64,000 nucleotides of DNA, taken from positions 186,001 to 250,000 of IMG/VR virus record IMGVR_UViG_3300034117_001582. One strand, 5' to 3'. The number at the start of each line of letters is the position of its first letter. Position 1 is the first letter of the stretch. Under the pieces are notes generated by a model, which made no database searches, had not been told where the DNA came from, and saw only the letters and a program-made list of their open reading frames with translations. Of the stretch, positions 4,592 to 63,855 are shown piece after piece. A program made the position numbers and the translations under genes.

Positions 4592-6517
4592 TTAAGCCGT
4601 TGGTTTTAACCCTATACCGCTAACGACATCTTGGACTTGTTTAAATTTCTCATCCATTTTAGTGGTAATATCTTTAATTGCCGGTTCGATTAACTTAGCA
4701 ACCTCTTGTTTAAATTTATTTTCATCCACACTTGCAAACATTAATCCTGAAATACCTTCTGTACCAAAACTTGTTTTGTAACCCTCCATCGCCTTTGTCG
4801 CAATCATTGCACTTAACTCATCAACTCTATTTTCTTTAATTGCTCTTTCAATAACATCTTCAGGAAGTTCTTCAAATGCTGTGAGAATCATATTATGCTC
4901 ATCTTCTTTATTTTTAACTTGGTCAGCAATTTTTTGACCCAATCTTGTTTTAATGTCCTTTAACACATTATTACCTTCAGCACCATACAATCCATTCATC
5001 ACATCCAAGAACGTTTCGTTAACGATTGTTTTATTGTAACCGGCACGTAATAACATTATTCTTTCCTCACGCAAAGTTGATTCAACAATTCTTTTTCTAT
5101 TTTTATTAATACCAACCAAAGAAAAATTATATCTTTTGTTAATTAATTTTTTTTCTTCTGAAATAATTTGTTTTTTTTCAATATGTTCAGAAACGACCTT
5201 TCTGATTGTATTAGATACTGACATAATCCTGTTTTCCTTATAAATATCTTTATTTTGTTCTAATGTGAATCTTAAACCAAATATTTTTAATTTAGAACCA
5301 ACATGTACCAATCTTTTTACCATTTGGTTTGCCCTTCTTGGGTATTTGTCTTTATATGTTAAAAAACACGACTCAACGTCTTGTCTTCTTTCAGTGATTG
5401 TCTCCTCACCACCTAAGGTATCAATAGTTTTTGAACCATCATTAACAAGTACCATATCATTATAAAAATCTCTTGTAAGTCTAATACACTGCCTTTCGGT
5501 AATGTCTTTTTGAGGTTTTGGAGGTTTTATTACAATTTTTTTAAGTTTAACTTCTATTTCGTTATTACTATTAAATTTTAAATTATATCTTTTTTTAACG
5601 GAAATATACCCTTGGTTGGTTACTTTAACAACTATTTTATCAATATCTTTAACTTCGTGTGTAACTCCACCTTTACCTGATATCAACGGGGTTGTTTCAT
5701 CGTCTCCGTAAACCTGTATATCAGAACCCATCAAAGGATTATCATTTTCATCAATAACGGAAACTTTAAAGGGTGTGGTTGTTTTGATTTTAAAATTTAC
5801 AACATTTTCATAACCCTTACGTATAATTAATTTTTTTTCAGAATTAGGGTTGTCCTCATCTCCCTTACTCATCATAGAGTTATTTAACTTGATGGTTTTT
5901 TCTATATTCTCTTTAATGTTAAAATACTTAACACCAACAGTAATGTTTAACAGTTCACCACTAGCCTCCGCATCGAATACGGGGTATTTTGTTTTATCTA
6001 AAATTATGTTAGATAACATACCATTATTATCGGTTACGTTATTTCCAAATTCAATATCAGTACGTTTATACTTTATGGTTATTGTCGCATTTGGTATAGG
6101 GGAATTAAACTCATCATTAACCTGAACAGATAATGATGTTATATCAAATGTTGTTTTTACTATTACCTCCTCAACGTTTTGTACGTCCCTAAACGTAAAG
6201 TCTTGATTATAAACTTTAGGTTGGGATAAATCAATATTCTCCACAAGATCTTCATACCCCTCATTTTTATTTGTTACTTTATATGTGTATACCCCTAATG
6301 GGATATTTTCAATTTTAAAGAAACCATTTTCGTCAGATGTCGCACCTTTAATTAATTTTTCGTTTTGAAATAATTTTACTTGTGAATTTGGAGATTTACT
6401 TGCTTTATATTTTACATAACCTTGAAGTGTAGCAAATCCATCTTCCTCGTTTAATAAACGATGAAGGGATGAAATTTGTTTTTTTTCAGTTTCAGTAAGG
6501 ATTAATTTTCTTAACAT
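4592..6517 (-). CDS. Leader-bearing 641-aa protein with carboxypeptidase-regulatory-like (transthyretin-fold) repeats and a helical C-terminal module
   Basis: LQGYVK...PNSQVKL...GATSDENGFFKIENIPLGVYT; VQVNDEFNSPIPNATITI...TDNNG; leader LTETEKKQISSLHRLLNEE; internal second leader at nt 5224. Confidence 0.65.
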   Translation of the reverse strand: MLRKLILTETEKKQISSLHRLLNEEDGFATLQGYVKYKASKSPNSQVKLFQNEKLIKGATSDENGFFKIENIPLGVYTYKVTNKNEGYEDLVENIDLSQPKVYNQDFTFRDVQNVEEVIVKTTFDITSLSVQVNDEFNSPIPNATITIKYKRTDIEFGNNVTDNNGMLSNIILDKTKYPVFDAEASGELLNITVGVKYFNIKENIEKTIKLNNSMMSKGDEDNPNSEKKLIIRKGYENVVNFKIKTTTPFKVSVIDENDNPLMGSDIQVYGDDETTPLISGKGGVTHEVKDIDKIVVKVTNQGYISVKKRYNLKFNSNNEIEVKLKKIVIKPPKPQKDITERQCIRLTRDFYNDMVLVNDGSKTIDTLGGEETITERRQDVESCFLTYKDKYPRRANQMVKRLVHVGSKLKIFGLRFTLEQNKDIYKENRIMSVSNTIRKVVSEHIEKKQIISEEKKLINKRYNFSLVGINKNRKRIVESTLREERIMLLRAGYNKTIVNETFLDVMNGLYGAEGNNVLKDIKTRLGQKIADQVKNKEDEHNMILTAFEELPEDVIERAIKENRVDELSAMIATKAMEGYKTSFGTEGISGLMFASVDENKFKQEVAKLIEPAIKDITTKMDEKFKQVQDVVSGIGLKPTA

Positions 6518-6519
6518 GT

Positions 6520-9500
6520 TTAAAAATTTCTCAAACCTAATTTACTTTCGTATTTGGTGTTACATTTATTTAAAATGTGATTAACCGTCATTTTTTGTCT
6601 TTCACTTAATTCGAATTCTTTTTTACCACTTTGTAACGACCTACAGAATCCTCTTTTAATCACTATCCTTGCAGAAAATTTAACTAAACTATTAAAGAAC
6701 TCTCTTGTTGGTTCTAATTTGTAAATAACAATCTTGTCGTTAAATATTGAATTAATCTCACTTGTGGTAAAATATTCTTTAAGTTCTTCAGGTGGAGTTT
6801 CAGTTGTCCAACCTTTTCCCATCTTTTCTCTTACTTTATCTCTTACCTTTTTTGGTAAGTCTTCAATACCTTCTTTTTCGTTTCTTTTAAGAACGTTTAT
6901 TGCCGACTCTTCTTTTTTTTTTAAGTCATCCTCCGATTTGGAGTTGACTTCAGTTTCTTTAGTTCGTGGTTCCTTTTTTTCTAAATCCATATTTGCCAAC
7001 TGATTTGGTGTATAATCACCTTTAACTAAAAACCAGTTTCCGTTTGCAGGCCTTGCAACTGAAAATATTTCCATCTCACCACGACTTTCTTTAATCGTTC
7101 TTAAAACTAATGCCAATCCTCTTGGTGTTGCTGATTCATGAATGTTTGCTAAGTCTTTTGTAAACATAATCTTAACAACATCTTCATGAGTGTCGATAAC
7201 TGCTCTAACAAATGAATCATCCTCATCGTATTTTTTTCTGTAATGATTAATTCTATCCATTACATCTTCCATTTTTATTTTTACTTCTTTATATTGGCCA
7301 GGATTTTTTTCATCCTGAGCTTTAAATGTAAACGTATCTTTCCAATGTTTGAAGTTATCTTCTCCAAATTTTTCTTTATTTCGTTCAGTTATCATAATAT
7401 TCGTTTTTTTGTATCTTGATTCATTCATATTACCACTAATAAATTCATCAAGACTAAATTCATATCCATCTTTTTCTGAATAAACAACCAAAGGCCTATC
7501 CTTACGTCTTGGGTTTGCTTTCAACGAATATGTGTTATTTTTATATAAAAACACAGGGTCTGAACTCTTATTATCTAAAGTGTCTATAGTCATAATTTTT
7601 TCTAATTCTTGAGCTTTAGGTATGTTGTCCCTATTTTGTACCAGACCAACTACCTGTAGTTTTCTCAATGTTAGTATTTCCATTTTTTTGGCATATTCTT
7701 TTGGGTGTTCCAAAGCATACGGCTTAACAACGTTATTATTATTATCATCATTATTTATTTCTTCAGTCTTTTTTTTAATTTTTTCTGCAGCATCGTCAGT
7801 AAAATACCATTTCACAAAGTTATCCACTTGTGTATTAAAAGGTATAACAAAATCAAAAATTTCAAAAAACCATTCCCCAAGAGTATCCGTTTCTCCGTTA
7901 AACATTAGTGCGAATGGGCCAAAAGTATCTTTTATATCGGACCACTCATTTTCTATTAAAGAACCTACAGGTGCTTTACAATACTTTGCATATGTTGAGT
8001 CTTCTACTAAATTTAGGTAACTGTTATCCCCTCCAACTTTAAAACCAAATAACTCAGATTCTTTATCACCAACCGTACTAAAAAAACACGACCATCCAAA
8101 CATTACAATAGATAAAGAAAAATTAATTGCTAACGGAATTAAAACATTAGCTCTGAACCATATTCTCATATACATGTCAAATACCGAGTCCATACCATAT
8201 CCAGAAATATATCTTTTTCCTTTTTTACCAAAAGTAAACCGGTTTAAAAGACTTCTTCTACTTTTGGCCATTTCTTCAACATATTCCTTAAAAGTACTTA
8301 AAGTACCCGTCAAACTATATTGCCACCATCTAGTTGCCCAACCAGAACTCGCTGCGTAAATTTTGCCAAAATAATCTTTAAACTTAGTTCCAAATGGATT
8401 TTTTAAAAAACTAAAAAAATCCTTAACTTTTGCCCATAACGCTTTGACTTCTTGTGTTCCAGTGGCTGCACTTTCTGTATCTAATTTTTCAAAAAATAGT
8501 TGCAATACGTTTAATTTTTCTTCACCCGTTCCAGGGATTACTTTTCCATTTACGTCTTTTCTAGATACATTTGCTTCTAACTCTTCTATTTTGCTTAAAA
8601 TGGTTTCTCTTAATTTATCATCAGATATTGAATTTTTTATTTTTGTTATAATATCATTATATAATGTAGTGTACGATTTGTCAGCAAATTCGTTAAATTG
8701 TTTCATTTTAATAACAAGATTTTTAATCCTATCTGCTAATAATTTTCCGGCATTAATATCTTTTACCGAACCTTGTTCAATACCAATTAAAAGGTCTGAA
8801 ATCTCTTGTTCTAAAACCGCCGCGTCTTTTTTAACTGATAAAAACACTAAATTTATTAATTCTGAAAATTGGTCTATTAAAAAGGGTGCCCCTCTAAGCC
8901 ACGTCATAATACTTTCCCACGCCCCTTGACCTTTTTTTACAGTTGGTATTATGATCTCCAATGACGCTTTATAAGGTTTTTCAAATAGCTCCTCTACCAC
9001 CTTACCTTCTTGTTCTGAAAAACCAAACAATTTTTTATATGTTGCAATAAATTTCTTTTTAATTACGTCCAAAGCCTGTTTTTTAACAAAATCACTATCT
9101 CCGGCAATTTGTTCCATTCTAGCCTTAACTTCCTTATTAAAATCTTGAACGACTTCTTTTGTAAGATTGTCAGCTGGATCGGCTAAGGCGGCTATTAAGT
9201 CTTCTTTCACCTCCGCACTAACAAAGTCTTCAACCCTATCATTTATTATTTTCCAATTATCAGTACCCATTTTTGACTCTAAAAAACTCATAATCTCTTC
9301 TATTGTTTTTCCAGCCCCAATCATTTCTTCAACTTTTGCAACCGCGGCTTTTCTAGCGGTTTCTTCCGCACCACTTTTAGCGGTTTTTCCAGCAACTTCT
9401 GAACGTGTATCACCAAACATTTTTAATATTGCTAACTGTCTTCTAGACGCCGCCTCTGCTCCCAACTCTCCGGTTTCTAAAACCATTCTCCAAATTGCGG

Positions 9501-9615
9501 TTCCAGCATCACCTCTACTTTCATTAATTAAATGTTTAATTGGCGTATTTTCCACAATGGGTAAATTAGACATACGTCTAAATCTTATTATTTCTTCTAA
9601 TAATTGTGCGTTCAT
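6520..9615 (-). CDS. Large 1031-aa leader-bearing protein, putative virion/internal head protein
   Basis: Long ORF; leader MNAQLLEEIIRFRRMSNLPIVE...LINES; hydrophobic stretch near aa 490-515; upstream TATTTATAAATA (motif at plus 9629-9635). Confidence 0.6.
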   Translation of the reverse strand: MNAQLLEEIIRFRRMSNLPIVENTPIKHLINESRGDAGTAIWRMVLETGELGAEAASRRQLAILKMFGDTRSEVAGKTAKSGAEETARKAAVAKVEEMIGAGKTIEEIMSFLESKMGTDNWKIINDRVEDFVSAEVKEDLIAALADPADNLTKEVVQDFNKEVKARMEQIAGDSDFVKKQALDVIKKKFIATYKKLFGFSEQEGKVVEELFEKPYKASLEIIIPTVKKGQGAWESIMTWLRGAPFLIDQFSELINLVFLSVKKDAAVLEQEISDLLIGIEQGSVKDINAGKLLADRIKNLVIKMKQFNEFADKSYTTLYNDIITKIKNSISDDKLRETILSKIEELEANVSRKDVNGKVIPGTGEEKLNVLQLFFEKLDTESAATGTQEVKALWAKVKDFFSFLKNPFGTKFKDYFGKIYAASSGWATRWWQYSLTGTLSTFKEYVEEMAKSRRSLLNRFTFGKKGKRYISGYGMDSVFDMYMRIWFRANVLIPLAINFSLSIVMFGWSCFFSTVGDKESELFGFKVGGDNSYLNLVEDSTYAKYCKAPVGSLIENEWSDIKDTFGPFALMFNGETDTLGEWFFEIFDFVIPFNTQVDNFVKWYFTDDAAEKIKKKTEEINNDDNNNNVVKPYALEHPKEYAKKMEILTLRKLQVVGLVQNRDNIPKAQELEKIMTIDTLDNKSSDPVFLYKNNTYSLKANPRRKDRPLVVYSEKDGYEFSLDEFISGNMNESRYKKTNIMITERNKEKFGEDNFKHWKDTFTFKAQDEKNPGQYKEVKIKMEDVMDRINHYRKKYDEDDSFVRAVIDTHEDVVKIMFTKDLANIHESATPRGLALVLRTIKESRGEMEIFSVARPANGNWFLVKGDYTPNQLANMDLEKKEPRTKETEVNSKSEDDLKKKEESAINVLKRNEKEGIEDLPKKVRDKVREKMGKGWTTETPPEELKEYFTTSEINSIFNDKIVIYKLEPTREFFNSLVKFSARIVIKRGFCRSLQSGKKEFELSERQKMTVNHILNKCNTKYESKLGLRNF

Positions 9616-9640
9616 TTGTTTTTTATTTATAAATACCTGT

Positions 9641-12277
9641 TTATCCTATAATGTAATTTGTTTTTAAAAATTTAACCCAATTACTTTCATTTTGTGCGTT
9701 TTGTTGGTTTTGTTGGTTTATTAACTTTTCATCCTCTCGAGCTTTCTTAATAATTTCTTCAAACTCCTTATCACTCACAACTTTTTGTTTTGTAAAGTCT
9801 GATATTTCTTTTTCTTTATCTTTTAATTTTTCTTCTTTTAATTTTTTAGTTACTTCAGGAGATTTCATAAATTCTATTATTTTTTTTAAATCCTCCTCGT
9901 TAATTGGTTGTTCTACTTGTTCTTTTGTTTTTTCCTTTTTTTCTTGGTTTGCCTTTTTATATGATGAGGTTTGGTATTGTTCAGGTATTGGTATACCTGG
10001 TCTCCAACCATTAAGAATAGCAGTCTTTAATAAATTATTGTCGTTAACACTACCATCACTCATAAATTCATTTTTTACAATTCCCCAAGAATCTTTACCA
10101 AGTATCCGTTCAACTACCGATTTTGGTGTTTCAGAGATTTTATTAATTTCATCTATACCTGCGTTATAATCTTGACCTAAAGCGATATACCCACCTAAAG
10201 TCGCACCAGCCTTAACCAAAGGAATACCAACAGACTTAAGTCCTTTAGCTGAAAAATTTAAAGCGGCATTTGTATATTCGGCAATTGTTTTTTTACCAAA
10301 TTTTGCGTCACCTACCGACATAACTTTAGCTGCCCCTTCCTGAATCATTCTTTGTATTTTTGATCCATATTCAGCAATTACTTTTAATGCTGCTTGTATT
10401 TCAGGTTTTAACATTAGTTTAGTGTATGCCGCCAATTCTTTCATCGTCATCGTGGTAACACTTTTAACTAAAAAGTCTGGACAAGCCATTATAAATTTAA
10501 TCGCTTGTTTTACTCCTTCCCCACCTTCTCTAAATACGCCTTTTACTACTGACGAGTCTATTGCAAACGGTATAAAAGCAAATAAAACCGATAGTCCGGC
10601 CATTCTAGTATTACCTTCACTAAGATATATTCCAGCATCTAATAAATCTATGGCCGCACTTAATAACGCAGCCTCAGTTAATCCCAAACCCAGTGCTGCC
10701 GCTTCAGTCATACCAGCAAATCTCATGGCTAAACCAACGCCTTGTAATCCTGGTATTGCAATAGCAACTAAACTAGCCAACATTAAAATGTCGTGTATAT
10801 CCCAACTTTGCAACCAATCAACAAAATTATCACCCATTTTACCATATTCCCAAAAATCACCATGCCATGGTTTTTTAACTTCAGGTTTTAATGGTGCACT
10901 ATAACCAAATTGTAACTGTACCGCTTTAAATTCACCGATATATGTCTCGTAAGTGTTTAAATCGGAAAACTGTTGGGTCATATTTTGTCTTATCATATCC
11001 ATTTCCCAATCTATATCCTTATAACCCTCAATATTTGACGGTATGTCTATTTTTTCTGGTGTCGGTTCAAATCCTGATTCAAAATTAGGTAAATCTAAAT
11101 CTTGACCTGTGTATAATGGATCAACACGTAGAGCATCGGCCTCTCTACCCCTATTTATTGCTTTTTCTTTAGCAATTTCATTTCTTTTTATATTTTCATA
11201 ATACCGATATTTTTCCTTTTTTCTTTCATCAAATTTAAGATATTTGGCATAGTTTTCTTTTGTTATACCATTAGGGAATTCTACATGGTAATATTCCTTT
11301 TTTTTATCTACTAATTCTTTATCTTTTTTTTTGTTAATATTAGCAACTTCATTTGTGTATTGAGTATGTCTATTGGCGATTTGTTTAGATGACGTGTCAA
11401 TTAAATTTAAATAATATGGTCTTGTAGATTTAATAAAGTTATCCATTTCTTTATTTCCGGTGGCAACTCCACCACTACTAGGGCTTTTTAAAGTCGCGCC
11501 TAAAGCCCCCATTGGGTCATATTCCACATTGCTATTTCTTATCCCCGTACCTGATTGATAGGAATTTATTCGATTTGCAGCCTCTTCTTTCTCCGCTAAA
11601 TCTTTATTAGATTGGTTTATTTGTGCTTGTAACCTACCAATGTCTGAATCTCTATTTTTTTTTAAAAGATTAAGAGTCGCTTGGTATTTATTTGTTATGT
11701 TATTACACTCCGCCAAATAAATGGGATATTCTTCATCAGCAAACCCCTCTGGTGTTTTTCTTCTGTCGGTATCATAATTAAATATCGGTAACCCATCCTT
11801 ACCTTTAATATAAAACGGGTTATTTTTATAAAATTCGTCACCAGGAGCATTATCTTTAAACCATTTTTTCATATATTCAGAATGTTCTTTTTCTTGAACA
11901 TCGTAACAACCAAGATTACCATTATATCTTCCCCATACCTCACATGACGGAGAACCAACACTAGTAAAAACCTTCCCCTCATTAACAACAGGAGGATAAG
12001 ATTCTGGATAACCCTTTAAATTTATACTCTCCCACCAATAACTTTTATTTAATGGGTTTAATATTGAATTTGGATTATTTGTTAATTTTATTTTATCTAT
12101 TCTATTTTGTAGTTCACGTTTAGCACTATTTTTATAGTCTTCACCATATGCTAATGAAGATATAATCTTTTTTAATTCATCGTTACTTACTGATGTGAAT
12201 TGATTAGGGGTGTCTCCAGTAAAGTTTACAACTTCATTTAAAATATTTTCTAACATTATATGTTTTTTATTATTCAC
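9641..12277 (-). CDS. 878-aa protein with a hydrophobic pre-toxin-TG-like segment, putative ejection protein
   Basis: ILMLASLVAIAIPG...IDLLDAGIYLSEGNTRMAGLSVLFAFIP; coiled-coil regions. Confidence 0.55.
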   Translation of the reverse strand: MNNKKHIMLENILNEVVNFTGDTPNQFTSVSNDELKKIISSLAYGEDYKNSAKRELQNRIDKIKLTNNPNSILNPLNKSYWWESINLKGYPESYPPVVNEGKVFTSVGSPSCEVWGRYNGNLGCYDVQEKEHSEYMKKWFKDNAPGDEFYKNNPFYIKGKDGLPIFNYDTDRRKTPEGFADEEYPIYLAECNNITNKYQATLNLLKKNRDSDIGRLQAQINQSNKDLAEKEEAANRINSYQSGTGIRNSNVEYDPMGALGATLKSPSSGGVATGNKEMDNFIKSTRPYYLNLIDTSSKQIANRHTQYTNEVANINKKKDKELVDKKKEYYHVEFPNGITKENYAKYLKFDERKKEKYRYYENIKRNEIAKEKAINRGREADALRVDPLYTGQDLDLPNFESGFEPTPEKIDIPSNIEGYKDIDWEMDMIRQNMTQQFSDLNTYETYIGEFKAVQLQFGYSAPLKPEVKKPWHGDFWEYGKMGDNFVDWLQSWDIHDILMLASLVAIAIPGLQGVGLAMRFAGMTEAAALGLGLTEAALLSAAIDLLDAGIYLSEGNTRMAGLSVLFAFIPFAIDSSVVKGVFREGGEGVKQAIKFIMACPDFLVKSVTTMTMKELAAYTKLMLKPEIQAALKVIAEYGSKIQRMIQEGAAKVMSVGDAKFGKKTIAEYTNAALNFSAKGLKSVGIPLVKAGATLGGYIALGQDYNAGIDEINKISETPKSVVERILGKDSWGIVKNEFMSDGSVNDNNLLKTAILNGWRPGIPIPEQYQTSSYKKANQEKKEKTKEQVEQPINEEDLKKIIEFMKSPEVTKKLKEEKLKDKEKEISDFTKQKVVSDKEFEEIIKKAREDEKLINQQNQQNAQNESNWVKFLKTNYIIG

Positions 12278-13295
12278 CGATAAATAAATCGGGTTGGTTT
12301 ATTTTTTTCATGTAATCCCCACCTGTATTTGATTCAAAATAGTTAGAAACCTCAGAAGGTTTAACACCACCTTTAGGTAGTTTTTTAAAACTTTTATTGA
12401 ATTCATACAAATAGTGTATTTTTTTATTATATTCTTTGGATCCCTCAATTGACCCCCCCTTACTATAGTTAGATAAATCGGAATCTAATTTTGAAAAAAT
12501 AGTTTTAAATGTACCATTTTTAACCATATCATATGGTAGATATATTACCAATCCTTTGTATTTTTTATTTTGTAACTCAGATAATGTCGCAGCCTTAAAA
12601 ACTAATTGATTATCTTTTAATGTTTTTTCTAACATTTGTAATAAGTTTATTACATCTAAACTATTTTCGGCATATATGTATATTTTCCACCCACTATAAT
12701 TTTTATCTCCATTATTAAAATTATAAAAATCTAAACTATCTGAAATGTGACTACTGTATTCTAAAGCAAATCCAGTTAAATCGTAGTCATCCCATTGGTC
12801 TTTTATATTGCTATTATAATAGTCTAAAATAATTGAATATGCGTTTTTAAAATCTTCTTCGTATAATTTACCTATAAATTCAGTAATACTATATATTATT
12901 CCTGCATATTTAAATTTAGGTAGTTCAACATCTAACTTAAGTTTATCACCATATTCATTTATAAGTGTTAAATACTTGTCTGTTATTAATTTTTTATATT
13001 CATCACTTTGATAAAATGATGACATAATTTCATTATATGGTTCTAAATTTTTAAGTTTTGCGATTTTAAATAAAATACCCAACTCGGTTTCGGTTAAGAT
13101 TGGTGAATTAATTATCTCTTCTAATGTTTTACCAGTTTTGTTTATTAATTTAGTTATTTCTTCTTCAGTTACGTCATCTACGGTATTTGCAACATTCTCG
13201 TTATCCTCATTAATATGTTTTTTTACGCTAATTAATGGAATACCCATTAACCTTCTGTAATTATTTATTTCTAATAATAAATTATTTTCTTTCAT
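12270..13295 (-). CDS. Leader-bearing protein with a C-terminal RamC_N/HopA1/phosphothreonine-lyase-like domain
   Basis: GWKIYIYA...VFKAAT...KYKGLVIYLP echoes GWKIHVS...FK...GK.ITIY; leader LLLEINNYRRLMG...INED. Confidence 0.45.
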   Translation of the reverse strand: MKENNLLLEINNYRRLMGIPLISVKKHINEDNENVANTVDDVTEEEITKLINKTGKTLEEIINSPILTETELGILFKIAKLKNLEPYNEIMSSFYQSDEYKKLITDKYLTLINEYGDKLKLDVELPKFKYAGIIYSITEFIGKLYEEDFKNAYSIILDYYNSNIKDQWDDYDLTGFALEYSSHISDSLDFYNFNNGDKNYSGWKIYIYAENSLDVINLLQMLEKTLKDNQLVFKAATLSELQNKKYKGLVIYLPYDMVKNGTFKTIFSKLDSDLSNYSKGGSIEGSKEYNKKIHYLYEFNKSFKKLPKGGVKPSEVSNYFESNTGGDYMKKINQPDLFIGE

Positions 13296-13627
13296 ACCTT
13301 ATAATTATTACCTGTTGGCCCCATGGTTCTTCCTGATGCCCATTTTTCACCAGCTTTACCTAACATATTACCTTTACCTCTACCAGTTTTATCCTCTCTT
13401 TTAGCACTTGTTATTGGATTACCTGGTCCTCTTCCTACTCCCGAGTCCCATGGCGTAATACTTGCTCCTGTGTCTGATGAGGTGTCTGTAGGTGCATCAC
13501 CTTCTTCATTAACCTCTTCTTCATTAACCTCTTCTTCATCCAATTCCGTTTCATCAATTTCTGCAGCATCTTTAACTTCCATAAGGAATTTAATTCTTTT
13601 AATATTATCTAAAAATTTTTTACTCAT
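13292..13627 (-). CDS. Small acidic/Gly-rich leader-bearing protein
   Basis: MSKKFLDNIKRIKFLME; acidic tract; W-x-SG-x-x-RG/MG-x-x-N-like repeats; 4-nt overlaps with both neighbours. Confidence 0.7.
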   Translation of the reverse strand: MSKKFLDNIKRIKFLMEVKDAAEIDETELDEEEVNEEEVNEEGDAPTDTSSDTGASITPWDSGVGRGPGNPITSAKREDKTGRGKGNMLGKAGEKWASGRTMGPTGNNYKV

Positions 13628-15228
13628 GCTACTATTTCAAAATTGTTAAGTTGGTTAAAAGCGTTACCTCTGGTTTCACTAGTTCCTGTACCTCCAGCGT
13701 TTAAGTCAACAAAGTAATTTATCGCATCATCTTCATTTGTAAATTCAGGAAGTTGGTCAGCGGATTTACATTTTGTAAAAAATGAGACTGCCACTTCAGC
13801 AGCAATATCAACATCATTTACAACTTCAGGGTTACTTACCAATTCCCTACCAATACAAGTACCATACTTTTCGTAATTCCCTTTAAACGTTAACCCATTA
13901 AACCCTCTTCCTCTATATTTAAAACCTTCGGTTTTTGAATTTCCAAACATACCTCCGTAAACTCGATTAAAAAATTTTTCATCGTCTGATTTTAATTCAT
14001 TTAATTCAACATCGTCAGATGGTACTCTACTTTTAAAAATTTCCCGAATTCTAGAGTTATCTGTATTACCATACCCAGTTTCATTTTGAGGGATAAACCC
14101 CGACTCTTTACCTATGACGCAAAGAATACCGACTTGGGTGTATGGGTTAGTAATCCCTTTTTTATTCATATAATCTATCATTATTTGAGCGTTTCGTCTT
14201 GTTTCACCACCTAAACCAACAATTTCAACTTTACCGTTTAAAAGTGAAACAACATTAGAAATTACACCCATTTTTATTAAGAACATAGATAAGTCTTCAT
14301 CATCAAAACCTTTAATTTTTAAATTAAAAAACATTTCCTCTAATGTTTCAGAATCCGCAATCCCCGTTTCTGGTAAATTAACGGATTTTTGATAATTATA
14401 AATCGCTTCTTGAGTGTCTCTGTCAAACTTACCGGTAATCTCTAAATCATCTGATATTGATAAGAAGTTCAGTGCTAATTGTATTTGTTCAATATCGGGT
14501 TTAAAACTACCACTACTTCTTGAGTCGTAAACGTTACCTGATTTCCACATTTCTTGAAATCTCTCTAAAAATTCATATATAGTATCAAAATCGGTAACAT
14601 CTTCACCACTAATATCAACATTATCTTTTTCTATGAACGGTAAGTCTTCTATTTTTGGTTCTATATCAATTTCAAAATCAGAAACATTTTGAAATAACGC
14701 ACTATCAATTTCATTTTTTAAGTTATTAATTTTATCATTACTAAACCCTAAACCATAATCTATAGAATCATATGACCCTAAAACATCTGCACCATTTTTA
14801 GTAAATGTCTGATAAAATAATTTTGATTCATCTTCTAACTCTTTAAAATCTTCCTTTTCTTCACCACCATAAAAATAATCCTCATCAACAATACCTTTAA
14901 TGATGTTAATATTTGCCCTTGGAAATGTTTTATTTAATGCGTCAATTAAAAATGGTATGTTTTTTTTATTTTTAAATTTATCATTAACCCCAATAGACAC
15001 AAAAACATGGTCTACGTAAGGCATTGGGGATTGGTCTGTTAGTTGATTTAACAATTTATCTATTGTCATATCATCGTTTACTAAGTTTGGTAAACTGATA
15101 AAATCATCACTTTCTAAATAACCTATAAGGCGGTCACCTATTAATACAACCTTAACTGGCGACTCGATATCCTCCTTAAGGTTTGACAATCTTTTAAAGT
15201 TTTTTATTTCATGTAAAATAGTTTTCAT
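13624..15228 (-). CDS. GH19-family lytic glycosidase with a peptidoglycan-binding domain and a degenerate SGNH-like N-terminal domain
   Basis: PG-binding IQLALNFL...TGKFDRDTQEAIYNYQ...TGIAD; GH19 KESG...YRGRGFNGLTFKGNY...NPEVV...AAEVAVSFF; N-terminal IGDR...SIGVND. Confidence 0.8.
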   Translation of the reverse strand: MKTILHEIKNFKRLSNLKEDIESPVKVVLIGDRLIGYLESDDFISLPNLVNDDMTIDKLLNQLTDQSPMPYVDHVFVSIGVNDKFKNKKNIPFLIDALNKTFPRANINIIKGIVDEDYFYGGEEKEDFKELEDESKLFYQTFTKNGADVLGSYDSIDYGLGFSNDKINNLKNEIDSALFQNVSDFEIDIEPKIEDLPFIEKDNVDISGEDVTDFDTIYEFLERFQEMWKSGNVYDSRSSGSFKPDIEQIQLALNFLSISDDLEITGKFDRDTQEAIYNYQKSVNLPETGIADSETLEEMFFNLKIKGFDDEDLSMFLIKMGVISNVVSLLNGKVEIVGLGGETRRNAQIMIDYMNKKGITNPYTQVGILCVIGKESGFIPQNETGYGNTDNSRIREIFKSRVPSDDVELNELKSDDEKFFNRVYGGMFGNSKTEGFKYRGRGFNGLTFKGNYEKYGTCIGRELVSNPEVVNDVDIAAEVAVSFFTKCKSADQLPEFTNEDDAINYFVDLNAGGTGTSETRGNAFNQLNNFEIVA

Positions 15229-15533
15229 TTGTATTCTGCTTTTGGTATTTTTTTAGGATAAACAACATAATATTCATTTAAAAATGAAATTAAATTATCC
15301 TCATCGTTTATATAATCAACATCAACATCTTCTTCCCATTCATCCTCATCATCCATTAATGATTCAAAAATGTCAAAGTTTTTTGAGTTATCAAATCCAA
15401 ACTCCTCAAAAAAACTATATTCAATAAAGTCTTCTCTTACCATATCATCACCATCACCAATCATCTTAAACTCGACGATTATTAAGTTTTGTACCTTGTC
15501 AATATATTGTGATATGACTTCAACTACTTCCAT
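15225..15533 (-). CDS. Acidic hypothetical protein
   Basis: ORF with coupled overlaps to both neighbours. Confidence 0.65.
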   Translation of the reverse strand: MEVVEVISQYIDKVQNLIIVEFKMIGDGDDMVREDFIEYSFFEEFGFDNSKNFDIFESLMDDEDEWEEDVDVDYINDEDNLISFLNEYYVVYPKKIPKAEYK

Positions 15534-16024
15534 TAGTTATATTTGTTAAATCTCCTAAACATATCAAGTGATTTATTCACACTCTCTTCTATTTGGTCTT
15601 CTTCACCGTCCAATTTTTGTTCATCGTCTAATAAATCGTCAAATTCAATATCATCGTATAATTCTTCATCTTCATCCTCATAAACGTCAGAAGGGCCTTT
15701 TGATACAAAATCATAAGGTCTTTTACCAAAACCCATTTGTGTCATGGATTGTTGTGGACCATCAGATTCAAACTCATATGCCTGGTCAATTGAATCGTAA
15801 TTTCCTGGTTTTGCGGTAATCTCATTAACATTATGATTTCTATATGTCTTAACATTACCTAAATTATCTACGGTAACGCCTTCTTTATCTCCTGCCGCAT
15901 CATAAACCGTAAGTGGTGTCATATTTGATGACACATTACCAGTTGCATAACCATCATAAACGGTTGAATGTTGTTTTAAAATTGATTGTCTGTCCTCATC
16001 AGACATTGTTGAATATCCTCTCAT
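15533..16024 (-). CDS. Leader-bearing acidic hypothetical protein
   Basis: MSDEDRQSILKQH leader type; C-terminal IEESVNKSLDMFRRF. Confidence 0.7.
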   Translation of the reverse strand: MRGYSTMSDEDRQSILKQHSTVYDGYATGNVSSNMTPLTVYDAAGDKEGVTVDNLGNVKTYRNHNVNEITAKPGNYDSIDQAYEFESDGPQQSMTQMGFGKRPYDFVSKGPSDVYEDEDEELYDDIEFDDLLDDEQKLDGEEDQIEESVNKSLDMFRRFNKYN

Positions 16025-41947: not shown

Positions 41948-41951
41948 AATA

Positions 41952-47745: not shown

Positions 47746-47801
47746 ATAATGATAAATATATGGGGAAATAAAAAACCCCACTAGTTGGAATGGGGGGTAT
47801 C

Positions 47802-50103: not shown

Positions 50104-51225
50104 TTATGCGTAGTTAACGTCTCTTGTTGTATCTATTTTTGCAAACTCCTGAGAGTAATCGTATATCTTATTTAAATCCACCTCTATATATGAATCATAC
50201 TCATCTTTTACTGTTTTTGTTGCGGTATTAAAAAGTGTTTTAACGTCATGTGCGTCAGTATCATTAATAAACAATTTAAAATTTAATAACGTAATATCTT
50301 CTGTACTTTTGAATGGTATCTTCATTAAATTATTCTCGTAAACCACATTAAAAACATTATCACCACTTTTAATCTTAACATTATCTTTTATTAATTTAAT
50401 AAAATTATCTAATGTTCCAAAATCATCTACCCCTAAAAGTCTTTTTAAATTTTGAACTCTTGATGAATTTTCAGTAGCAGAGTTACCGTAATCGGTATTA
50501 GTATTAACGGAAATTTGGGGGCCTTTAGCGTCTTCTGGTAAATAATCCACACCCTTACTGATAAAATACCCGCTAAGGCAGTGATTAAACTCGTGTACTA
50601 AAATTAACATAATAGAGTTTTTATTAACGTCACTTGGAAATACATTTTTAACACAAAAATTCAACTTAGAATATTCACCTTTAATAACAAACCCACCTGT
50701 AGAATCGTCACATGTCAAACTAAAAACTAAATTTACACTATTTAAAAAGTTTTTTAATTCATTTTTTTGTTTGTTATCCCATGCCGTTATCACGCCTTTT
50801 AATTTTACCTCCTCTTCTTTTACCATATCATTAAAAAACTCAAGGGTTTCTTTTGCTCTTTGTAATTCAGAAATATTGGCATTTTTTAACCCATTAACTT
50901 TGTTTTGCCAATTAATTACTTGTTTTTTATATTTTTCTAAATCTTCTGTATTGTATTTAGAACCTTTTCCTATTTTTTCTTGAACTTTTTTATTGAACCA
51001 CTCGCTATCTATGTATTTTAACATGTAAGTTTTTGCTTCTGTAAAAAATGGTTTAACAAAATTTTCAACCTCTGTTATTTTTTCTTGTTCGGTTTTGGCT
51101 TTGTCTTCCCAATAGGCTCGAAGGGTATTTAAATTAATGTTTTTTAATTTACAAGCATCATCCACTTCCTCTTTAATTACACCCATTATTGATTGTATTC
51201 TTCTTATGTTTTCGTGTAAATTCAT
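50104..51225 (-). CDS. MNLHENIRRIQ-leader HExxH metallopeptidase-like protein
   Basis: ILVHEFNHC...ENSSRV..LKRLL; paralog of 53720. Confidence 0.7.
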   Translation of the reverse strand: MNLHENIRRIQSIMGVIKEEVDDACKLKNINLNTLRAYWEDKAKTEQEKITEVENFVKPFFTEAKTYMLKYIDSEWFNKKVQEKIGKGSKYNTEDLEKYKKQVINWQNKVNGLKNANISELQRAKETLEFFNDMVKEEEVKLKGVITAWDNKQKNELKNFLNSVNLVFSLTCDDSTGGFVIKGEYSKLNFCVKNVFPSDVNKNSIMLILVHEFNHCLSGYFISKGVDYLPEDAKGPQISVNTNTDYGNSATENSSRVQNLKRLLGVDDFGTLDNFIKLIKDNVKIKSGDNVFNVVYENNLMKIPFKSTEDITLLNFKLFINDTDAHDVKTLFNTATKTVKDEYDSYIEVDLNKIYDYSQEFAKIDTTRDVNYA

Positions 51226-51285
51226 ATTAATAAATATATCATAAATAAAAATCCCCCCATCTTTACAAGTGGAGGATTAGTCATT

Positions 51286-51987
51286 TTATGGTACTTGTTG
51301 TAACCCTAACTCAAAGTAGTCATACTCGTTGTTGTAAAATCTTGGATTGTTTACAAATATATTATACATTGGAAGTAAAATGTTATGTAACTCTTCTTTC
51401 CATTCGTCGTAGTCAGTTTCTGTCATATCACTTATAAAATATTTAGGTTTTACTTTTTCTAATGTTCGTTCTAAATTGTCTTGAAGATTAGTTTTTCTTA
51501 GGTTTGTTATATTTCCATAAACATATACTTCTACTTCAGGGTCATTTGTTGTGACATGCGTGGTTTCATAATCAAAGTCAAACTCATAACGATAAAACAC
51601 CCCCGAAAAATCAATATGTTTAATTTGTTTTCCACTAACATTAAGATGTGTTCTATCTTCTTTTGATACATAACAATTGTTTCTGATATTTTTCATCCAT
51701 GAAGCAAAATGCTTATATTTGTTAAAATCAGTGTTTGTCATATCACAAAATGATTTAAACTCATCATGTAAAACTTGAGTTAGTATTGTTTTTGAATATG
51801 AATAATCATTTGGGTTTTTAACTTTCCATTTTATTTGTAACCCTGTCCATTTTGGAACTAAAAAAAGTCCTTCGAATTCTATTGGGTTTTCATTTAAATA
51901 ATTATAATAGTAATACTTTACAGGATTTTCTTTAGGGTTGGTTCTTTCTTCCCTTAATACTCTTCTTATGTTCTCTTGTAGGTTCAT
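51286..51987 (-). CDS. MNLQENI-leader hypothetical protein
   Basis: MNLQENIRRVLREE; ATGA overlap with the upstream gene. Confidence 0.8.
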   Translation of the reverse strand: MNLQENIRRVLREERTNPKENPVKYYYYNYLNENPIEFEGLFLVPKWTGLQIKWKVKNPNDYSYSKTILTQVLHDEFKSFCDMTNTDFNKYKHFASWMKNIRNNCYVSKEDRTHLNVSGKQIKHIDFSGVFYRYEFDFDYETTHVTTNDPEVEVYVYGNITNLRKTNLQDNLERTLEKVKPKYFISDMTETDYDEWKEELHNILLPMYNIFVNNPRFYNNEYDYFELGLQQVP

Positions 51988-52715
51988 TCTGATAAATCTA
52001 TAAACCAAGCAGATATTGGCACGTTTAGTTGGTTGGCGATGGTTGATCGTTTGTGTCCACCAATTAATGTATATTCATTTCCTTCTCTTCCGCCTGTTGG
52101 TAATTTCATTACAAATGGTGCTGGAAGTTCTCTATGTTTTTCATTTCTTATTTTTTCTATATTATCAACATAACCTTTGTGACGTTGTTTAACTTCTCCA
52201 TCATCGCCTGTCATTTGTTTAATTAAACCTGATGATGTGGTATCTTTAAACATTCCTGGAAACTCTTTTGAGAATCTACCCATATAAAATGTGTTATTTA
52301 TCATATCATTATCCCATTCTTCCATTCTTCCTTTATTAAACAAATTAAACCCTTCCATTTGTGATTGTCCATCTTTTAATAAAACTTGTCTAAAATCCTC
52401 CCAATCATCCATTAAATCAGATATTTCTTTATCTAATAGAATGTCTTTAATTTCTTGTTCATCATCCACTTCACTTCCTTTTGAATGTTCGGCAATCATT
52501 TTGAATGTATGAGGAAATATGGAATACATTAAATCATAATTTTGTGGGTGAAAGAATTCATCTTTACTGAACCTCATATTATTTCCCAATAGTTCATCTA
52601 ACTCTTGGTTAAAGTATTCTACTGTTGGTTCTAACCAAGTGATAGAATATGGATTTGATATCTCATTTAACCCCATCATTGATTTAATTCTTTGTATGTT
52701 TTCTTGTAGGTTCAT
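51984..52715 (-). CDS. MNLQENI-leader protein with a C-terminal ParB/Srx-like motif
   Basis: LPAPFVMK...YTLIGGHKRSTIA. Confidence 0.55.
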   Translation of the reverse strand: MNLQENIQRIKSMMGLNEISNPYSITWLEPTVEYFNQELDELLGNNMRFSKDEFFHPQNYDLMYSIFPHTFKMIAEHSKGSEVDDEQEIKDILLDKEISDLMDDWEDFRQVLLKDGQSQMEGFNLFNKGRMEEWDNDMINNTFYMGRFSKEFPGMFKDTTSSGLIKQMTGDDGEVKQRHKGYVDNIEKIRNEKHRELPAPFVMKLPTGGREGNEYTLIGGHKRSTIANQLNVPISAWFIDLSE

Positions 52716-52978: not shown

Positions 52979-53296
52979 TTACTTTGTCTTCTTAACACAA
53001 TTAGGATATCGTTTACCAAACATTGTCTTCATACCTTTTTGAGTATATCCTGCCCAACATCTCTCTGTAAGTTCACCTTCTTTCATCTCACTTTGTTTAC
53101 GTTTACCTTGACAGTGAGCTCTTTGACTAAATCCTTTTGGGTTATTGCAGTCGATTGATTTTTTATACTTTTCTGACCACTTTTCTGTAACATCCCCTTC
53201 TCCCATCTCTTCGTCATTTTTTATTGTATTTTCATTGATTACTCTTTTAACTAACAAAATAAGGTCTGATTCCGTTAACCGTATTACTTTTTTCAT
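52979..53296 (-). CDS. LTESDL-leader protein carrying two Cys-paired mini-modules
   Basis: VTE-KWSEKYKKSIDCNNPKGFSQRAHCQG; LTE-RCWAGYTQKGMKTMFGKRYPNCVKK. Confidence 0.8.
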   Translation of the reverse strand: MKKVIRLTESDLILLVKRVINENTIKNDEEMGEGDVTEKWSEKYKKSIDCNNPKGFSQRAHCQGKRKQSEMKEGELTERCWAGYTQKGMKTMFGKRYPNCVKKTK

Positions 53297-53297
53297 A

Positions 53298-53705
53298 TTA
53301 TCTATTGTATGGCCTAAACCTTGATGGGTTTGATTTTATTGCTGACTTTGGGAATTTTAATCCAACACCCTGTTGTCTTGCGTTCTTTAATGTTCTTGCG
53401 TATTCGGTTAGTTCTTCATTTCCCATATCATCAATAGCCTTTACTAATTTATGGCATTTCTCTGATACCTCACCCTTTTCGTGATCAGTTATTGATAATT
53501 TTACTTTGTTGTAATTTATTTTAATATCAGGATGATGATTTTGTGATTCGGCAATCTTCGCAACTTTATTAACAAATTCCATTGATTCATTAAAATCTTT
53601 GAATTTAAAAGTTCTTTCTAATTTTTGCTCTGAATCACTCCAACCTTTGGATTCATTCATATTTATCATTTCCTGTATTCTTCTTATGTTCTCTTGTAGG
53701 TTCAT
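53298..53705 (-). CDS. phhB: Pterin-4a-carbinolamine dehydratase (PCD/PhhB) fused to the MNLQENI leader
   Basis: GW...KLERTFKFKDFNESMEFVNKVAKIAESQNHHPDIKINYNKV. Confidence 0.85.
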   Translation of the reverse strand: MNLQENIRRIQEMINMNESKGWSDSEQKLERTFKFKDFNESMEFVNKVAKIAESQNHHPDIKINYNKVKLSITDHEKGEVSEKCHKLVKAIDDMGNEELTEYARTLKNARQQGVGLKFPKSAIKSNPSRFRPYNR

Positions 53706-53719
53706 ATTATATGAATATA

Positions 53720-54787
53720 TTATGCGTAGTTAACATCATTATTTGTATTTATTTTTGCAAATTGTATTGAGTAGTCATATATTTCTTTTAAATTGATTTT
53801 TAGTAAAGAAAGATTTAAATCTATCATATAATCTCCTACTGATATGGCATCTGATGCCGTCATTTCATATTTTTTTCTATAAAAATCATATTTGTTTACC
53901 ATTTCAGGATCTTCAGTGTATTCATTAAATAACCACCAAACGTCAATAGCGTCTACATTGTTAATATTAATCCTAACGTCTATCCATTTCAATCGTTTAT
54001 CGGATTTTTTATTGTTTTTACCATATATTTTTATTAAATTACCATCATATTCCACTTTATCAATAACTACCTTATCGTCTTGCCCTGAAAACTTAACGTT
54101 ATCTTTTATTAATTTAATAAAATTATCTAATGTTCCAAAATCGGTTACATTTAAAAGTCTTTTAAGTGTTTTAATACGAGCCGAATGTTCGTTATTTGAT
54201 TTACCATAATCCTTATCCCATTCTTTAGGATAACGTTCCCCATACCATTTTGAATCAATATTGGATGGTAAATAGTTAGATACACCAATATTTTTAAAAT
54301 AAAAAGAAATACAATGGTCAAATTCATGGACTAAAATTAATATACCCTCATTTTTATTAACACCATTAGGAAATATATTTTTAGTACAAAAATTAAGATT
54401 AGAATATTTGTCTTCATTAACAAACCCACCTACTTTGGGTTGACAGATTGGATCATCCGAATTAAAAACTAAATTTACATTATTTATAAAGTCTTTTAAT
54501 TCTTTTTTTTGTTTATCACCCCAATCTCCATTTGTGAACTCAATAAGTTTTTTATTGAACCATTCACTGTCTACGTATTTTAACATGTAAGTTCTTGCTT
54601 GAGTAAAAAATGGTTTAACAAAATTTTCAACCTCTGTTATTTTTTCTTGTTCGGTTTTAGATTTGTCTTCCCAATATTTTTTTAAAGTAATAGGGTCAAC
54701 ATGTTTTAATTTACAAGCATCATCCACTTCCTCTTTAATTACCCCCATCATTTCCTGTATTCTTCTTATGTTCTCTTGTAGGTTCAT
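53720..54787 (-). CDS. MNLQENI-leader HExxH metallopeptidase-like protein
   Basis: ILVHEFDHC...EHSARI..LKRLL; paralog of 50104. Confidence 0.7.
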   Translation of the reverse strand: MNLQENIRRIQEMMGVIKEEVDDACKLKHVDPITLKKYWEDKSKTEQEKITEVENFVKPFFTQARTYMLKYVDSEWFNKKLIEFTNGDWGDKQKKELKDFINNVNLVFNSDDPICQPKVGGFVNEDKYSNLNFCTKNIFPNGVNKNEGILILVHEFDHCISFYFKNIGVSNYLPSNIDSKWYGERYPKEWDKDYGKSNNEHSARIKTLKRLLNVTDFGTLDNFIKLIKDNVKFSGQDDKVVIDKVEYDGNLIKIYGKNNKKSDKRLKWIDVRININNVDAIDVWWLFNEYTEDPEMVNKYDFYRKKYEMTASDAISVGDYMIDLNLSLLKINLKEIYDYSIQFAKINTNNDVNYA

Positions 54788-56630: not shown

Positions 56631-57140
56631 TTATTTTTGACACCCAGGACTTTTGGGGTTCATTTTTTTACAATGGGTTCCTGTATAATAATCCCAACCT
56701 TTTTCAGAGTGACCAATTGATGTTTTTTCAAAAATATTTGGTTCAAAAAAAGTATTTAATTTATTAATAATTTCATTATATACTTTTATAACTTCGCCAT
56801 CCCATTTTTTATTTTTTTCAGCATCAAATTTTACACTTTCCATACTTGATTTAAAATAACCAACTAAACCAACTAATTTAGGAACGTCATCAATAGTTTC
56901 ACCTTCTTTTAAATTTTCATATTTTTCTTTATCGTAGTATTTACCATCAACTTTAACATAAAAATTTAACATACGTTCCACATTGTCTTTTAACTCTAAA
57001 ATTGCGCTTATATGTGTTTTTTCATTATTATCACTTTTTAAGTTTAATTTATTTTTTATATATTCTAAACTGTTAGTGTTTTCCTCAGATAAGGTTATCA
57101 TCATTGATTTAATCCTTTGTATGTTTTCTTGTAGGTTCAT
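56631..57140 (-). CDS. MNLQENI-leader hypothetical protein
   Basis: MNLQENIQRIKSMMITLSEE. Confidence 0.8.
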   Translation of the reverse strand: MNLQENIQRIKSMMITLSEENTNSLEYIKNKLNLKSDNNEKTHISAILELKDNVERMLNFYVKVDGKYYDKEKYENLKEGETIDDVPKLVGLVGYFKSSMESVKFDAEKNKKWDGEVIKVYNEIINKLNTFFEPNIFEKTSIGHSEKGWDYYTGTHCKKMNPKSPGCQK

Positions 57141-62793: not shown

Positions 62794-63214
62794 CATCATA
62801 TTCTTCTTGTACAAATTGGTATTTCATATTCATTGAATAGTCACCTCCCGCACTCCATTCACAACCAATAAACCAAAACATCAAGTTATTATGTTTACCT
62901 TTCTTTTCCCCAAAAGACCCATTACTTGTAAATGAATAATTAAGTAAAATTTTATTCAATTCTTTATCGACTGTTTTTAGTTGGTCGGTAAACGAAAAAA
63001 GGTCAGGGTCTTCACACCAAGATGTTATTAATAATTCACCCTCAATTTCGTTACTTCTGCTAATATAATTAATATTCGCAGTTTCTATATTTGTTATTAA
63101 ACTTGAATCTACATTACTTTGTAATATCCACGCAATTTTTTGAGCAGATCTAATAAACTTTTCTTTAAGATCTGAAGTATCTTCTTTTAATACTTTTCTA
63201 ATTATTTCTTTCAT
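62783..63214 (-). CDS. Leader cassette, hypothetical protein
   Basis: MKEIIRKVLKED. Confidence 0.8.
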   Translation of the reverse strand: MKEIIRKVLKEDTSDLKEKFIRSAQKIAWILQSNVDSSLITNIETANINYISRSNEIEGELLITSWCEDPDLFSFTDQLKTVDKELNKILLNYSFTSNGSFGEKKGKHNNLMFWFIGCEWSAGGDYSMNMKYQFVQEEYDDGE

Positions 63215-63855
63215 TTTACTGGCTTACCGTATTTGTAGAATTTCTGTTGTATGTTTATTGTGCCCTTACATCCACCTGTCTTCTTAGTCCCATTATCATT
63301 AAAACATTTAGGTATGGTTTTATTAAAATAATAAACCATTTTAGGCTCCCCTGAATTGCCTGAGTGCATGGATTGTAATTGTCCATTAACCGCAGACTCA
63401 CCTCCACCAGCACTTCCTCTACTATCGAATTGCTCGTAAGTATATCCATCAGTACTAGGACCAATAGTAACTTCCCAATTTACCGTTAAAGTATTTGGGT
63501 CAATAAACACATACATGTCTTTAATATCAACGGCCTTAACATTTTTATTTTTAAATTTATAATCTTTAATACCATTTTGTACTATCGTATTAATTCTACC
63601 ACCAAACCCATCGGACCGTCTTCTGTGAAATGAATGTAATGCGTCGTAAACTCCTGATTTACCAGCAGCACTATAACTTCCTTTTATTACTTCATCTGAT
63701 GAAAATCCTTTTGATGGGTCTAACCATAGTGAACCTTTAAGGTCTTTAGTCGGGTCAGGTTTAATATTAGCCCCTTTTTTCTTTTCGTTATCCTCTAATA
63801 TATTAGGATTTAAACCAACATATTCTTTTAATACTTTTCTAATTAAATCTTTCAT
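63211..63855 (-). CDS. Leader cassette, hypothetical protein
   Basis: MKDLIRKVLKEY; TATTTATA upstream. Confidence 0.8.
   Translation of the reverse strand: MKDLIRKVLKEYVGLNPNILEDNEKKKGANIKPDPTKDLKGSLWLDPSKGFSSDEVIKGSYSAAGKSGVYDALHSFHRRRSDGFGGRINTIVQNGIKDYKFKNKNVKAVDIKDMYVFIDPNTLTVNWEVTIGPSTDGYTYEQFDSRGSAGGGESAVNGQLQSMHSGNSGEPKMVYYFNKTIPKCFNDNGTKKTGGCKGTINIQQKFYKYGKPVK

Follow-up and report, generated by a model that had tools for sequence, protein, structure and literature searches.

We analyzed a 64,000-nucleotide stretch of viral DNA (positions 186,001 to 250,000 of IMG/VR record IMGVR_UViG_3300034117_001582; hereafter the window), in which 48 genes for otherwise diverse proteins begin with one of a few recurrent N-terminal peptides, referred to here as tags. 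The tags are grouped into families F1 to F6, corresponding to six leader families listed in a preliminary description of the same DNA. The window has a GC content of 30%, and its minus strand holds nearly all genes. About half of the window genes are tagged (Table 1), as are 60 of 168 genes surveyed over approximately 135 kb. The window is part of an uncultured 290-kb T4-type phage; its proteins recur unchanged on two sets of contigs, from freshwater metagenomes of the Joint Genome Institute (JGI; 246 and 293 kb) and from IMG/VR (approximately 290 kb). The contigs come from lakes (JGI samples 3300034105 and 3300034356). No megablast match to 40 kb of window DNA was found among GenBank phages. 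The nearest cultured relatives of the capsid protein are from Flavobacterium phage vB_FspM_immuto (40% identity), a Microcystis phage, and Rhodothermus phage RM378, and it also matches several huge uncultured phages. Because the genome carries a CHU_C-domain type IX secretion cargo gene and host-type TAnnTTTG promoter boxes, the host is probably a member of the Bacteroidota. No tRNAs were found in the window, nor did an Rfam search of it give any match.

Families F1 to F4 (35 genes) are robust, and F5 and F6 (13 genes) are loose. A hidden Markov model (HMM) built from the first 30 residues of F1 proteins and run on the six-frame translation of the window matched exactly 11 sites, all at start codons and none elsewhere; the starts of two F1 genes were corrected (Table 1). 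Leave-one-out HMMs recovered all members of F2 (8), F3 (10), and F4 (6) at E ≤ 3e-4, along with two of six F5 and four of seven F6 members. The eighth F2 member, the plus-strand PAP2 gene 22036, was absent from the preliminary description. In a chance control requiring at least 8 of 14 identical residues per protein pair within residues 2-27, 61 of 1,891 pairs passed, compared with one or two pairs for internal windows and none for shuffled N-termini. The similarity ends after 11-25 residues, and once 30 residues were trimmed BLAST found it only within the groups 37752/38444/46217, 43250/43736, and 50104/53720. The gene coordinates given earlier all hold, with some starts moved, and the statement that the proteins are unrelated beyond their leaders stands at BLAST sensitivity save for these three small groups. 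The division into six families fared less well: leave-one-out recovery upholds F1-F4, but six is too generous a count given that F5 and F6 are loose and the families intergrade. The F1 model weakly matches F3 tags, genes 51286 and 57190 bridge F2 and F3, and F2, F3, and F6 grade into one another, as do F1 and F4. In gene 58713 the F3 tag recurs inside the protein, around residue 335.

At identical tag residues, codon pairs differ in 26-46% of cases, vs 45-53% expected for independent codons. Because codons differ where residues are identical, selection acts on the peptide; in F3 synonymous divergence falls short of saturation. No Pfam or PHROGs family spans a tag in searches with the tagged proteins, and a hydropathy scan found a hydrophobic segment in none of the tags. 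A secretion signal (Sec, lipoprotein, or type IX) was considered and rejected, since the tags have no hydrophobic core and the genes with signal peptides or CHU_C domains are untagged. Likewise rejected was a ribbon-helix-helix or other known N-terminal DNA-binding module, given the lack of a Pfam family spanning a tag and the chance-level matches of the F1 profile to PDB sequences.

The tags have one motif in common. Of the 48 tagged proteins, 45 have L/I-x-E within their first 30 residues, vs 10 of 31 others. Per residue, its frequency is 0.061 within these 30-residue starts of tagged proteins, 0.013 further along the same proteins, and 0.010-0.017 in untagged ones, making it 4-5 times denser in the tagged starts. 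The tags contain or end in this motif, with 43250/43736 and 15533 as exceptions. No enrichment was seen in the tags for L/I-x-D, L/I-x-Q, or S/A/G-x-E, the last having a frequency of 0.009 per residue in tags vs 0.008-0.013 elsewhere. F1 carries two motifs, L-T-E at residues 7-9 and I-x-E at residues 20-22. Among 199 metagenomic F1 copies the two glutamates are the sole invariant residues (E9 in 196/196 and E22 in 194/195) and Asp never substitutes for either, while the nearby Asp11 is variable. E15 of F4 is invariant in 54 lysozyme orthologues.

Outside the window, approximately 30 kb past its coordinate 1, the collinear 246-kb contig carries a T4-type head module; along this contig a collagen-like fibre gene is followed by glycosyltransferase genes, more tagged genes, a gene for a Clp-like ATPase, and the head module. 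The module encodes a large terminase (Terminase_6N), Portal_T4, three small proteins, a Peptidase_S77 protease, a 516-residue acidic scaffold-like protein, and a Gp23-family capsid protein (E 2.9e-73), in the head gene order of T4 (20-67-68-21-22-23). The protease matches Pfam Peptidase_S77 (PF03420) with 88.7 bits against a cut-off of 27 (E 4.8e-25) and the PHROG head maturation protease phrog_207 (E 7.8e-43); it is 33% identical to T4 gp21 (E 4e-23), and the His and Ser motifs are retained. The first 60 residues of the capsid protein are near-identical in relatives and end in I-N-E, directly before Ala. In an alignment with T4 gp23, this I-N-E/A falls on the T4 cleavage site L-T-E/A, and the E and A columns are invariant. 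The capsid propeptide would presumably be cut after I-N-E. The preliminary description had predicted a prohead protease and scaffold sharing the motif, and these were found in the form of the Peptidase_S77 protein, the 516-residue scaffold-like protein, and the capsid I-N-E/A. Its appeal to a phiKZ-type motif was not borne out, as S/A/G-x-E is not enriched and both head genes and motif are of T4 type. Its reading of the leader proteins as head-packaged, injected effectors has partial support. By L/I-x-E density over whole proteins, a 242-residue protein encoded after the portal gene ranks first, a rank that does not reach significance once the 168 tests are corrected for. A 149-residue protein is a further core candidate. 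On the opposite strand, a gene for ribosomal protein S21 lies between the portal and prohead protease genes (locus L143, 15343-15537). Between the window and the head module, also on the opposite strand, a gene for a 681-residue ClpA/B-type double-AAA+ ATPase without the usual N-terminal domain adjoins a gene for an M42/M20-like aminopeptidase (locus L142, 13756-16885).

Two classes of promoter-like boxes precede genes of this phage: TATTTAT, 11-13 or 20-29 bases before ATG, and the Bacteroidota-type TAnnTTTG, often starting 12 bases before ATG. Both spacings would imply leaderless or near-leaderless mRNAs. Among genes with a recognisable box, tagged genes have TATTTAT in 29 cases and TAnnTTTG alone in 1, vs 27 and 12 for untagged genes (Fisher p 0.004); the untagged genes with the host-type box are mostly enzyme genes. 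TATTTAT also precedes the genes for the protease, the scaffold, the 242-residue core candidate, and tail fibres. Many tagged genes are promoter-gene-terminator cassettes. Genes 53298, which encodes a pterin-4a-carbinolamine dehydratase, and 53720 have 42 identical 5′ bases; other gene pairs have 27-30. Because the proteins of 53298 and 53720 are otherwise unrelated, the 42 identical bases indicate that a tag was grafted recently by recombination. Elsewhere, the proteins of genes 39895 (39895-41235) and 41321 (41321-41947) have in common a C-terminal domain of approximately 115 residues (45% identity) behind differing N-termini, an instance of domain shuffling, and those of 39895 and 46694 (46694-47299) have in common a short motif, L-G-x-V-K-P-L-I-x-E, approximately 20 residues in.

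Almost none of the tagged cargo has a domain recognisable with Pfam or PHROGs, and a Pfam search with F1 proteins from metagenomes (86 sequences) yielded nothing beyond four stray domains. Tagged proteins with domains include the pterin-4a-carbinolamine dehydratase, a PAP2 protein, a GH19 protein with a peptidoglycan-binding domain, and a GH24 lysozyme with LysM encoded just outside the window. The view that secreted or host-like genes lack tags is right for the CHU_C, CAP, UvrC, FKBP, metallophosphatase, and GT2 genes, but these four proteins do carry tags. Fibre and fibre-like proteins are untagged. Genes 6520 and 9641 encode mid-protein hydrophobic segments; two peptidoglycan hydrolases and large proteins with such segments are as expected of ejected proteins. 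In the lysozyme, the F4 tag is kept in 102 of 120 homologues and, in an alignment of orthologues, is conserved better than the attached enzyme, with a variable linker behind it. AlphaFold models the lysozyme domain with a predicted local distance difference test score (pLDDT) above 90 and residues 1-20 as a helix outside it with pLDDT 54-69, so that the tag is predicted to lie outside the fold. A model of gene 45675 from 13 sequences was of low confidence (pLDDT 61) and served for the helix call only.

Tags of this kind are widespread in viral metagenomes. Among 1.84 billion representatives, the F1 profile matched 7,455 protein clusters (50% identity level) at E ≤ 0.001; in the best matches the tag is 80-90% identical and attached to unrelated sequences. 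Genomes were searched for the F1 core with a degenerate DNA pattern, which matched more than 120 loci in IMG/VR and, in 596 Gb of bacterial and archaeal genomes, three sites, all on Bacteroidota metagenome-assembled contigs. Among the 120 IMG/VR loci listed, 223 of 226 F1 copies stand at a Met start, the 213 F1 proteins long enough to compare form 136 unrelated groups, and F2-F5 co-occur in 47 loci. Two contigs binned with gut Bacteroidaceae and Prevotellaceae (loci L013, 6497-6534, and L014, 2284-2321) carry a variant F1 tag with the same core, a short insertion, and the ending V-L-R-E; therefore the tag family reaches gut Bacteroidales phages. The protease has at least 594 relatives in IMG/VR. 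A tblastn search of the F1, F2, and F4 tags against GenBank phages gave no match at E ≤ 10, although the low-complexity filter could hide some, and the tags appear not to be known from cultured phages. A full-text search for the F1 core motif returned no paper, and the literature searched holds no description of the tags. The cultured relative immuto, a phage of Flavobacterium sp. LMO8, has the same head gene order and only two small tag-like families, one of whose tags joins an F2/F6-like half to an F4-like half.

The nearest known system is that of T4, in which the gp21 protease cuts after L/I-x-E, the internal proteins have in common a targeting sequence of 10 residues, which attaches to the scaffolding core and is removed at L/I-x-E, and replacement of the Glu at the cut site by Asp prevents processing (PMC9026906; PMC3012670). 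We hold with moderate confidence that the tags are a much expanded, T4-like capsid-targeting and propeptide system. Late in infection, the tagged proteins would be made from the promoter class of the head and fibre genes, and their short amphipathic N-terminal tags would bind the scaffolding core of the assembling prohead. The shell would close around the core, and the gp21-family serine protease would cut after the Glu of L/I-x-E, F1 offering two sites. Mature proteins would then be free inside the head, and many would exit with the DNA at the next infection. Core binding, cleavage, presence in the virion, and ejection of the tagged proteins are what we infer here; the lines of evidence from sequence, head genes, and promoters, all of them indirect, agree with T4-like targeting and maturation and fit none of the rival explanations formulated below.

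The resemblance to the capsid-targeting sequences of T4 IPI, IPII, and IPIII and to gp21 propeptides is close in several respects. In both cases a short N-terminal peptide ending in L/I-x-E is the sole feature common to diverse proteins, a gp21-family protease, gp22-like scaffold, gp23-type capsid, and gp20-type portal are encoded in equal order, and the residue at the cut position is Glu and not Asp. F3 tags have 11-13 residues vs 10 in T4, a comparison of format and length only, as the peptides are too short for a homology test (PMC9026906). The differences are mainly of scale and elaboration: tens of genes per 64 kb and 7,455 clusters for one tag, vs a handful in T-even phages; at least four tag families, of which F1 has 22 residues, two motifs, and much stronger conservation; and cargo that includes large multi-domain proteins and enzymes. 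Moreover, the host here would be one of the Bacteroidota, and targeting and cleavage are predictions from sequence. In phiKZ, 201phi2-1, and SPN3US, jumbo phages as well, a protease related to gp21 matures many head proteins, likewise cutting after Glu (PMC9026906; PMC5694885). Their motif, unlike the one found here, has a small residue at -2, while the capsid protein and protease of the present phage match T4 families directly. We know of no description of short tags in common on unrelated proteins in phiKZ, 201phi2-1, or SPN3US. A looser analogy may be drawn with the cargo-loading peptides of encapsulins and bacterial microcompartments, in which a portable, often amphipathic terminal peptide with a flexible linker sends unrelated proteins into a shell. 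The encapsulin shell fold is the phage capsid fold. Those peptides, however, are not removed, belong to cells and not to viruses, and have no sequence relation that we could find to the tags. The promoter-stem-loop cassettes of T4-type phages are likewise hyperplastic arrays of small genes with their own promoter and hairpin and with recombination at conserved gene-proximal sequences (PMC2839356), but the conserved element there is non-coding DNA, whereas here it is a translated peptide under protein-level selection.

Several observations weigh against a T4-like role. The scale is without precedent: were tagging as frequent in the remainder of the genome, the head would have to hold more than 100 kinds of cargo protein. 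A metabolic-type enzyme (the pterin-4a-carbinolamine dehydratase) and a PAP2 phosphatase are tagged, and the tagged GH24 lysozyme could be an endolysin, which would be expected to stay cytoplasmic. The tags are longer and far better conserved than a three-residue cleavage motif needs; conservation beyond those three residues therefore implies a specific receptor. Proteins with multiple, internal, or C-terminal tag copies exist but are rare, and internal L/I-x-E motifs are not depleted in tagged proteins. A scan of the surroundings of related proteases in 80 contigs turned up only 8 F1 tags, and the neighbours of the protease gene are rarely tagged. Genes for thioredoxin, GIY-YIG, and S21 proteins are likewise preceded by the TATTTAT box, which hence may not be strictly late. 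Finally, the enrichment statistics count related sequences, so that their independent basis is no more than four to six families. Of more tentative standing is a stronger version of the targeting reading, in which the four or more N-terminal labels might form a multi-address code that routes well over 100 proteins per genome, and thousands of families in the clade, into the prohead; distinct labels could correspond to distinct places or times of loading.

Much of the same evidence could be read in other ways. The conservation over 16-22 residues, which exceeds the needs of a cleavage site, and the amphipathic helix predicted to be detached from the fold would also suit docking helices that are not removed and that serve another late assembly (a tail or baseplate, a membrane site, or a chaperone), with their bearers outside the head. 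The rare internal and C-terminal copies resemble a reusable binding module, and F6-tagged genes stand in an operon whose last gene encodes a tail fibre. We think this unlikely, since it leaves unexplained why the sole invariant residues are Glu with Leu or Ile at -2, never Asp, and why L/I-x-E is common to all of the otherwise dissimilar families; furthermore, the fibre and fibre-like proteins themselves are untagged. Somewhat less probable still is that the tags record family history without any targeting role, tandem duplication having been followed by fast divergence everywhere except the start, with 5′-end recombination shuffling the cassettes (cf. PMC2839356). Every family occurs in tandem arrays, many members are promoter-gene-terminator cassettes, F3 synonymous divergence is below saturation, and the long identical 5′ ends of the dehydratase gene and its neighbour (42 bases), and of other pairs (27-30), speak for such shuffling. 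Conversely, synonymous sites have mostly diverged while residues are kept, thousands of unrelated proteins spread over many contigs carry F1 at 80-90% identity, and the F4 tag is better conserved than its lysozyme. Purifying selection of this kind needs a function at the protein level, and recombination explains the spread of tags but not their retention.

AAA+ substrates typically carry N-terminal tags, and the adjoining genes noted above for the ClpA/B-like ATPase (681 residues) and the M42/M20-like peptidase raise the idea that the tags are signals for a phage Clp-type AAA+ unfoldase, used in timed degradation or in unfolding before transport, with the M42-like aminopeptidase trimming the products. 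This seems very improbable to us: co-occurrence in one genome is the sole link, the box before the peptidase gene is of host type, which sets this gene apart from the tagged ones, and the L/I-x-E pattern goes unexplained. We give hardly any credence to conservation at the mRNA level, that is, for initiation on leaderless or very short-leader transcripts or as the site of a translational regulator. Boxes only 11-13 or 20-29 bases before ATG would indeed leave many transcripts leaderless or nearly so, but codons vary freely at fixed residues, the tags are recognisable as protein only, and untagged genes have equal box spacing.

While the principle of a T4-like targeting and propeptide system is known from T4, what is new is the size of the repertoire, the presence of several tag families, the long bipartite F1, and its distribution across a large clade of Bacteroidota phages not yet cultured. 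On the multi-address reading, no larger repertoire of proteins delivered by virions would be known, and the labels would allow host-takeover and anti-defence proteins to be mined from metagenomes. If the tags are capsid addresses, a 22-residue peptide would mark thousands of dark-matter proteins as virion cargo without experiment. Such cargo would act in the first seconds of infection and would be a likely source of new anti-defence functions. T4 targeting, known from few coliphage proteins, would then be an ancient, expandable system across the T4 superfamily, and the tags would supply ready-made, strongly conserved peptides for loading foreign proteins into phage heads. The tags also bear on the coding capacity of jumbo phages, as roughly a third to half of the surveyed genes carry one.

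Table 1. Tagged genes and example promoter-like boxes, in window coordinates; genes are named by their first coordinate.
Position	Strand	Family	Genes and remarks
4592..16024	-	F6 (loose), F5	Operon-like block immediately upstream of collagen-like fibre gene. F6-type tags: 6520 (1031 residues), 9641 (878 residues), 12270, 13292, 13624 (PG_binding_1 + GH19). F5-type tags: 4592 (CarboxypepD_reg/Big_1), 15533. Leave-one-out recovers 6520, 13624, and 12270 only
20973..21512	-	F1	179 residues; acidic linker behind tag
22036..22629	+	F2-like	Soluble PAP2-domain protein; sole plus-strand tagged gene
22618..23178	-	F4	186 residues; leave-one-out E 3.9e-10
24551..24844	-	F1	97 residues; most divergent member, tag two residues shorter
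26131..26505	-	F6 (doubtful)	124 residues; not recovered by leave-one-out
29153..29617	-	F2	Start corrected to ATG at 29617
30371..32137	-	F6	588 residues from corrected start; leave-one-out E 2e-4
32828..35910	-	F5 (loose)	32828 (615 residues), 34933 (325 residues); 59-residue gene between; weak basis
37752..39893	-	F4, F3	F4 genes 37752 and 38444 (C-terminal domain in common), then F3 gene 39393
41321..43022	-	F1, F5	F1 genes 41321, 41952, 42792 (start corrected to 43022); F5 gene 42294; promoter-like box each, several with terminator hairpin
43250..44146	-	F4	Paralogous pair 43250/43736; tag variant without Glu residues
44226..46121	-	F1	44226, 45157, 45675; single-gene cassettes (promoter box, gene, hairpin terminator); untagged membrane-protein gene 44732 among them
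46217..47299	-	F4, F5	F4 gene 46217 (start corrected to 46621); F5 gene 46694
47386..48176	-	F1	47386 (start corrected to 47745), 47802
50104..52715	-	F2	50104, 51286 (start 51987), 51984
52979..53296	-	F1	105 residues; within F2 array
53298..54787	-	F2	53298 (pterin-4a-carbinolamine dehydratase), 53720
56631..57140	-	F2	169 residues
57190..63855	-	F3	Nine genes in tandem; tags 11-13 residues, all ending L-x-E
46143, 45617, 44158, 43699	-		TATTTAT boxes (examples); example host-type boxes are in loci L145 and L009

Other features of the region were also recorded. Amid the tagged genes lie two untagged ones, for a DUF5856 protein (21559-21999) and an FKBP-type peptidyl-prolyl isomerase (27713-28165). 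Approximately 1.9 kb at 48200-50100 is without a convincing open reading frame; its G+C content is above that of its surroundings, it has C-rich and G-rich tracts, and it has no Rfam match and no tRNA. The CHU_C gene at 16755-19214 on the minus strand encodes an 819-residue protein with a signal peptide, SprB and PKD repeats, 30 cysteines, and the CHU_C type IX secretion sorting domain; it has a phage-type promoter box and is the first gene of an operon whose last gene encodes the fibre. The collagen-like (Gly-X-Y repeat) tail-fibre-type gene itself occupies 1-4067 on the minus strand, extends past the window edge, and is whole in locus L135 (10413-19172). It has 2,919-2,958 codons, its length differing among contigs, and a GC content of 44.5% vs 30% for the genome, and its repeats yield long opposite-strand shadow open reading frames that one gene caller chose instead.

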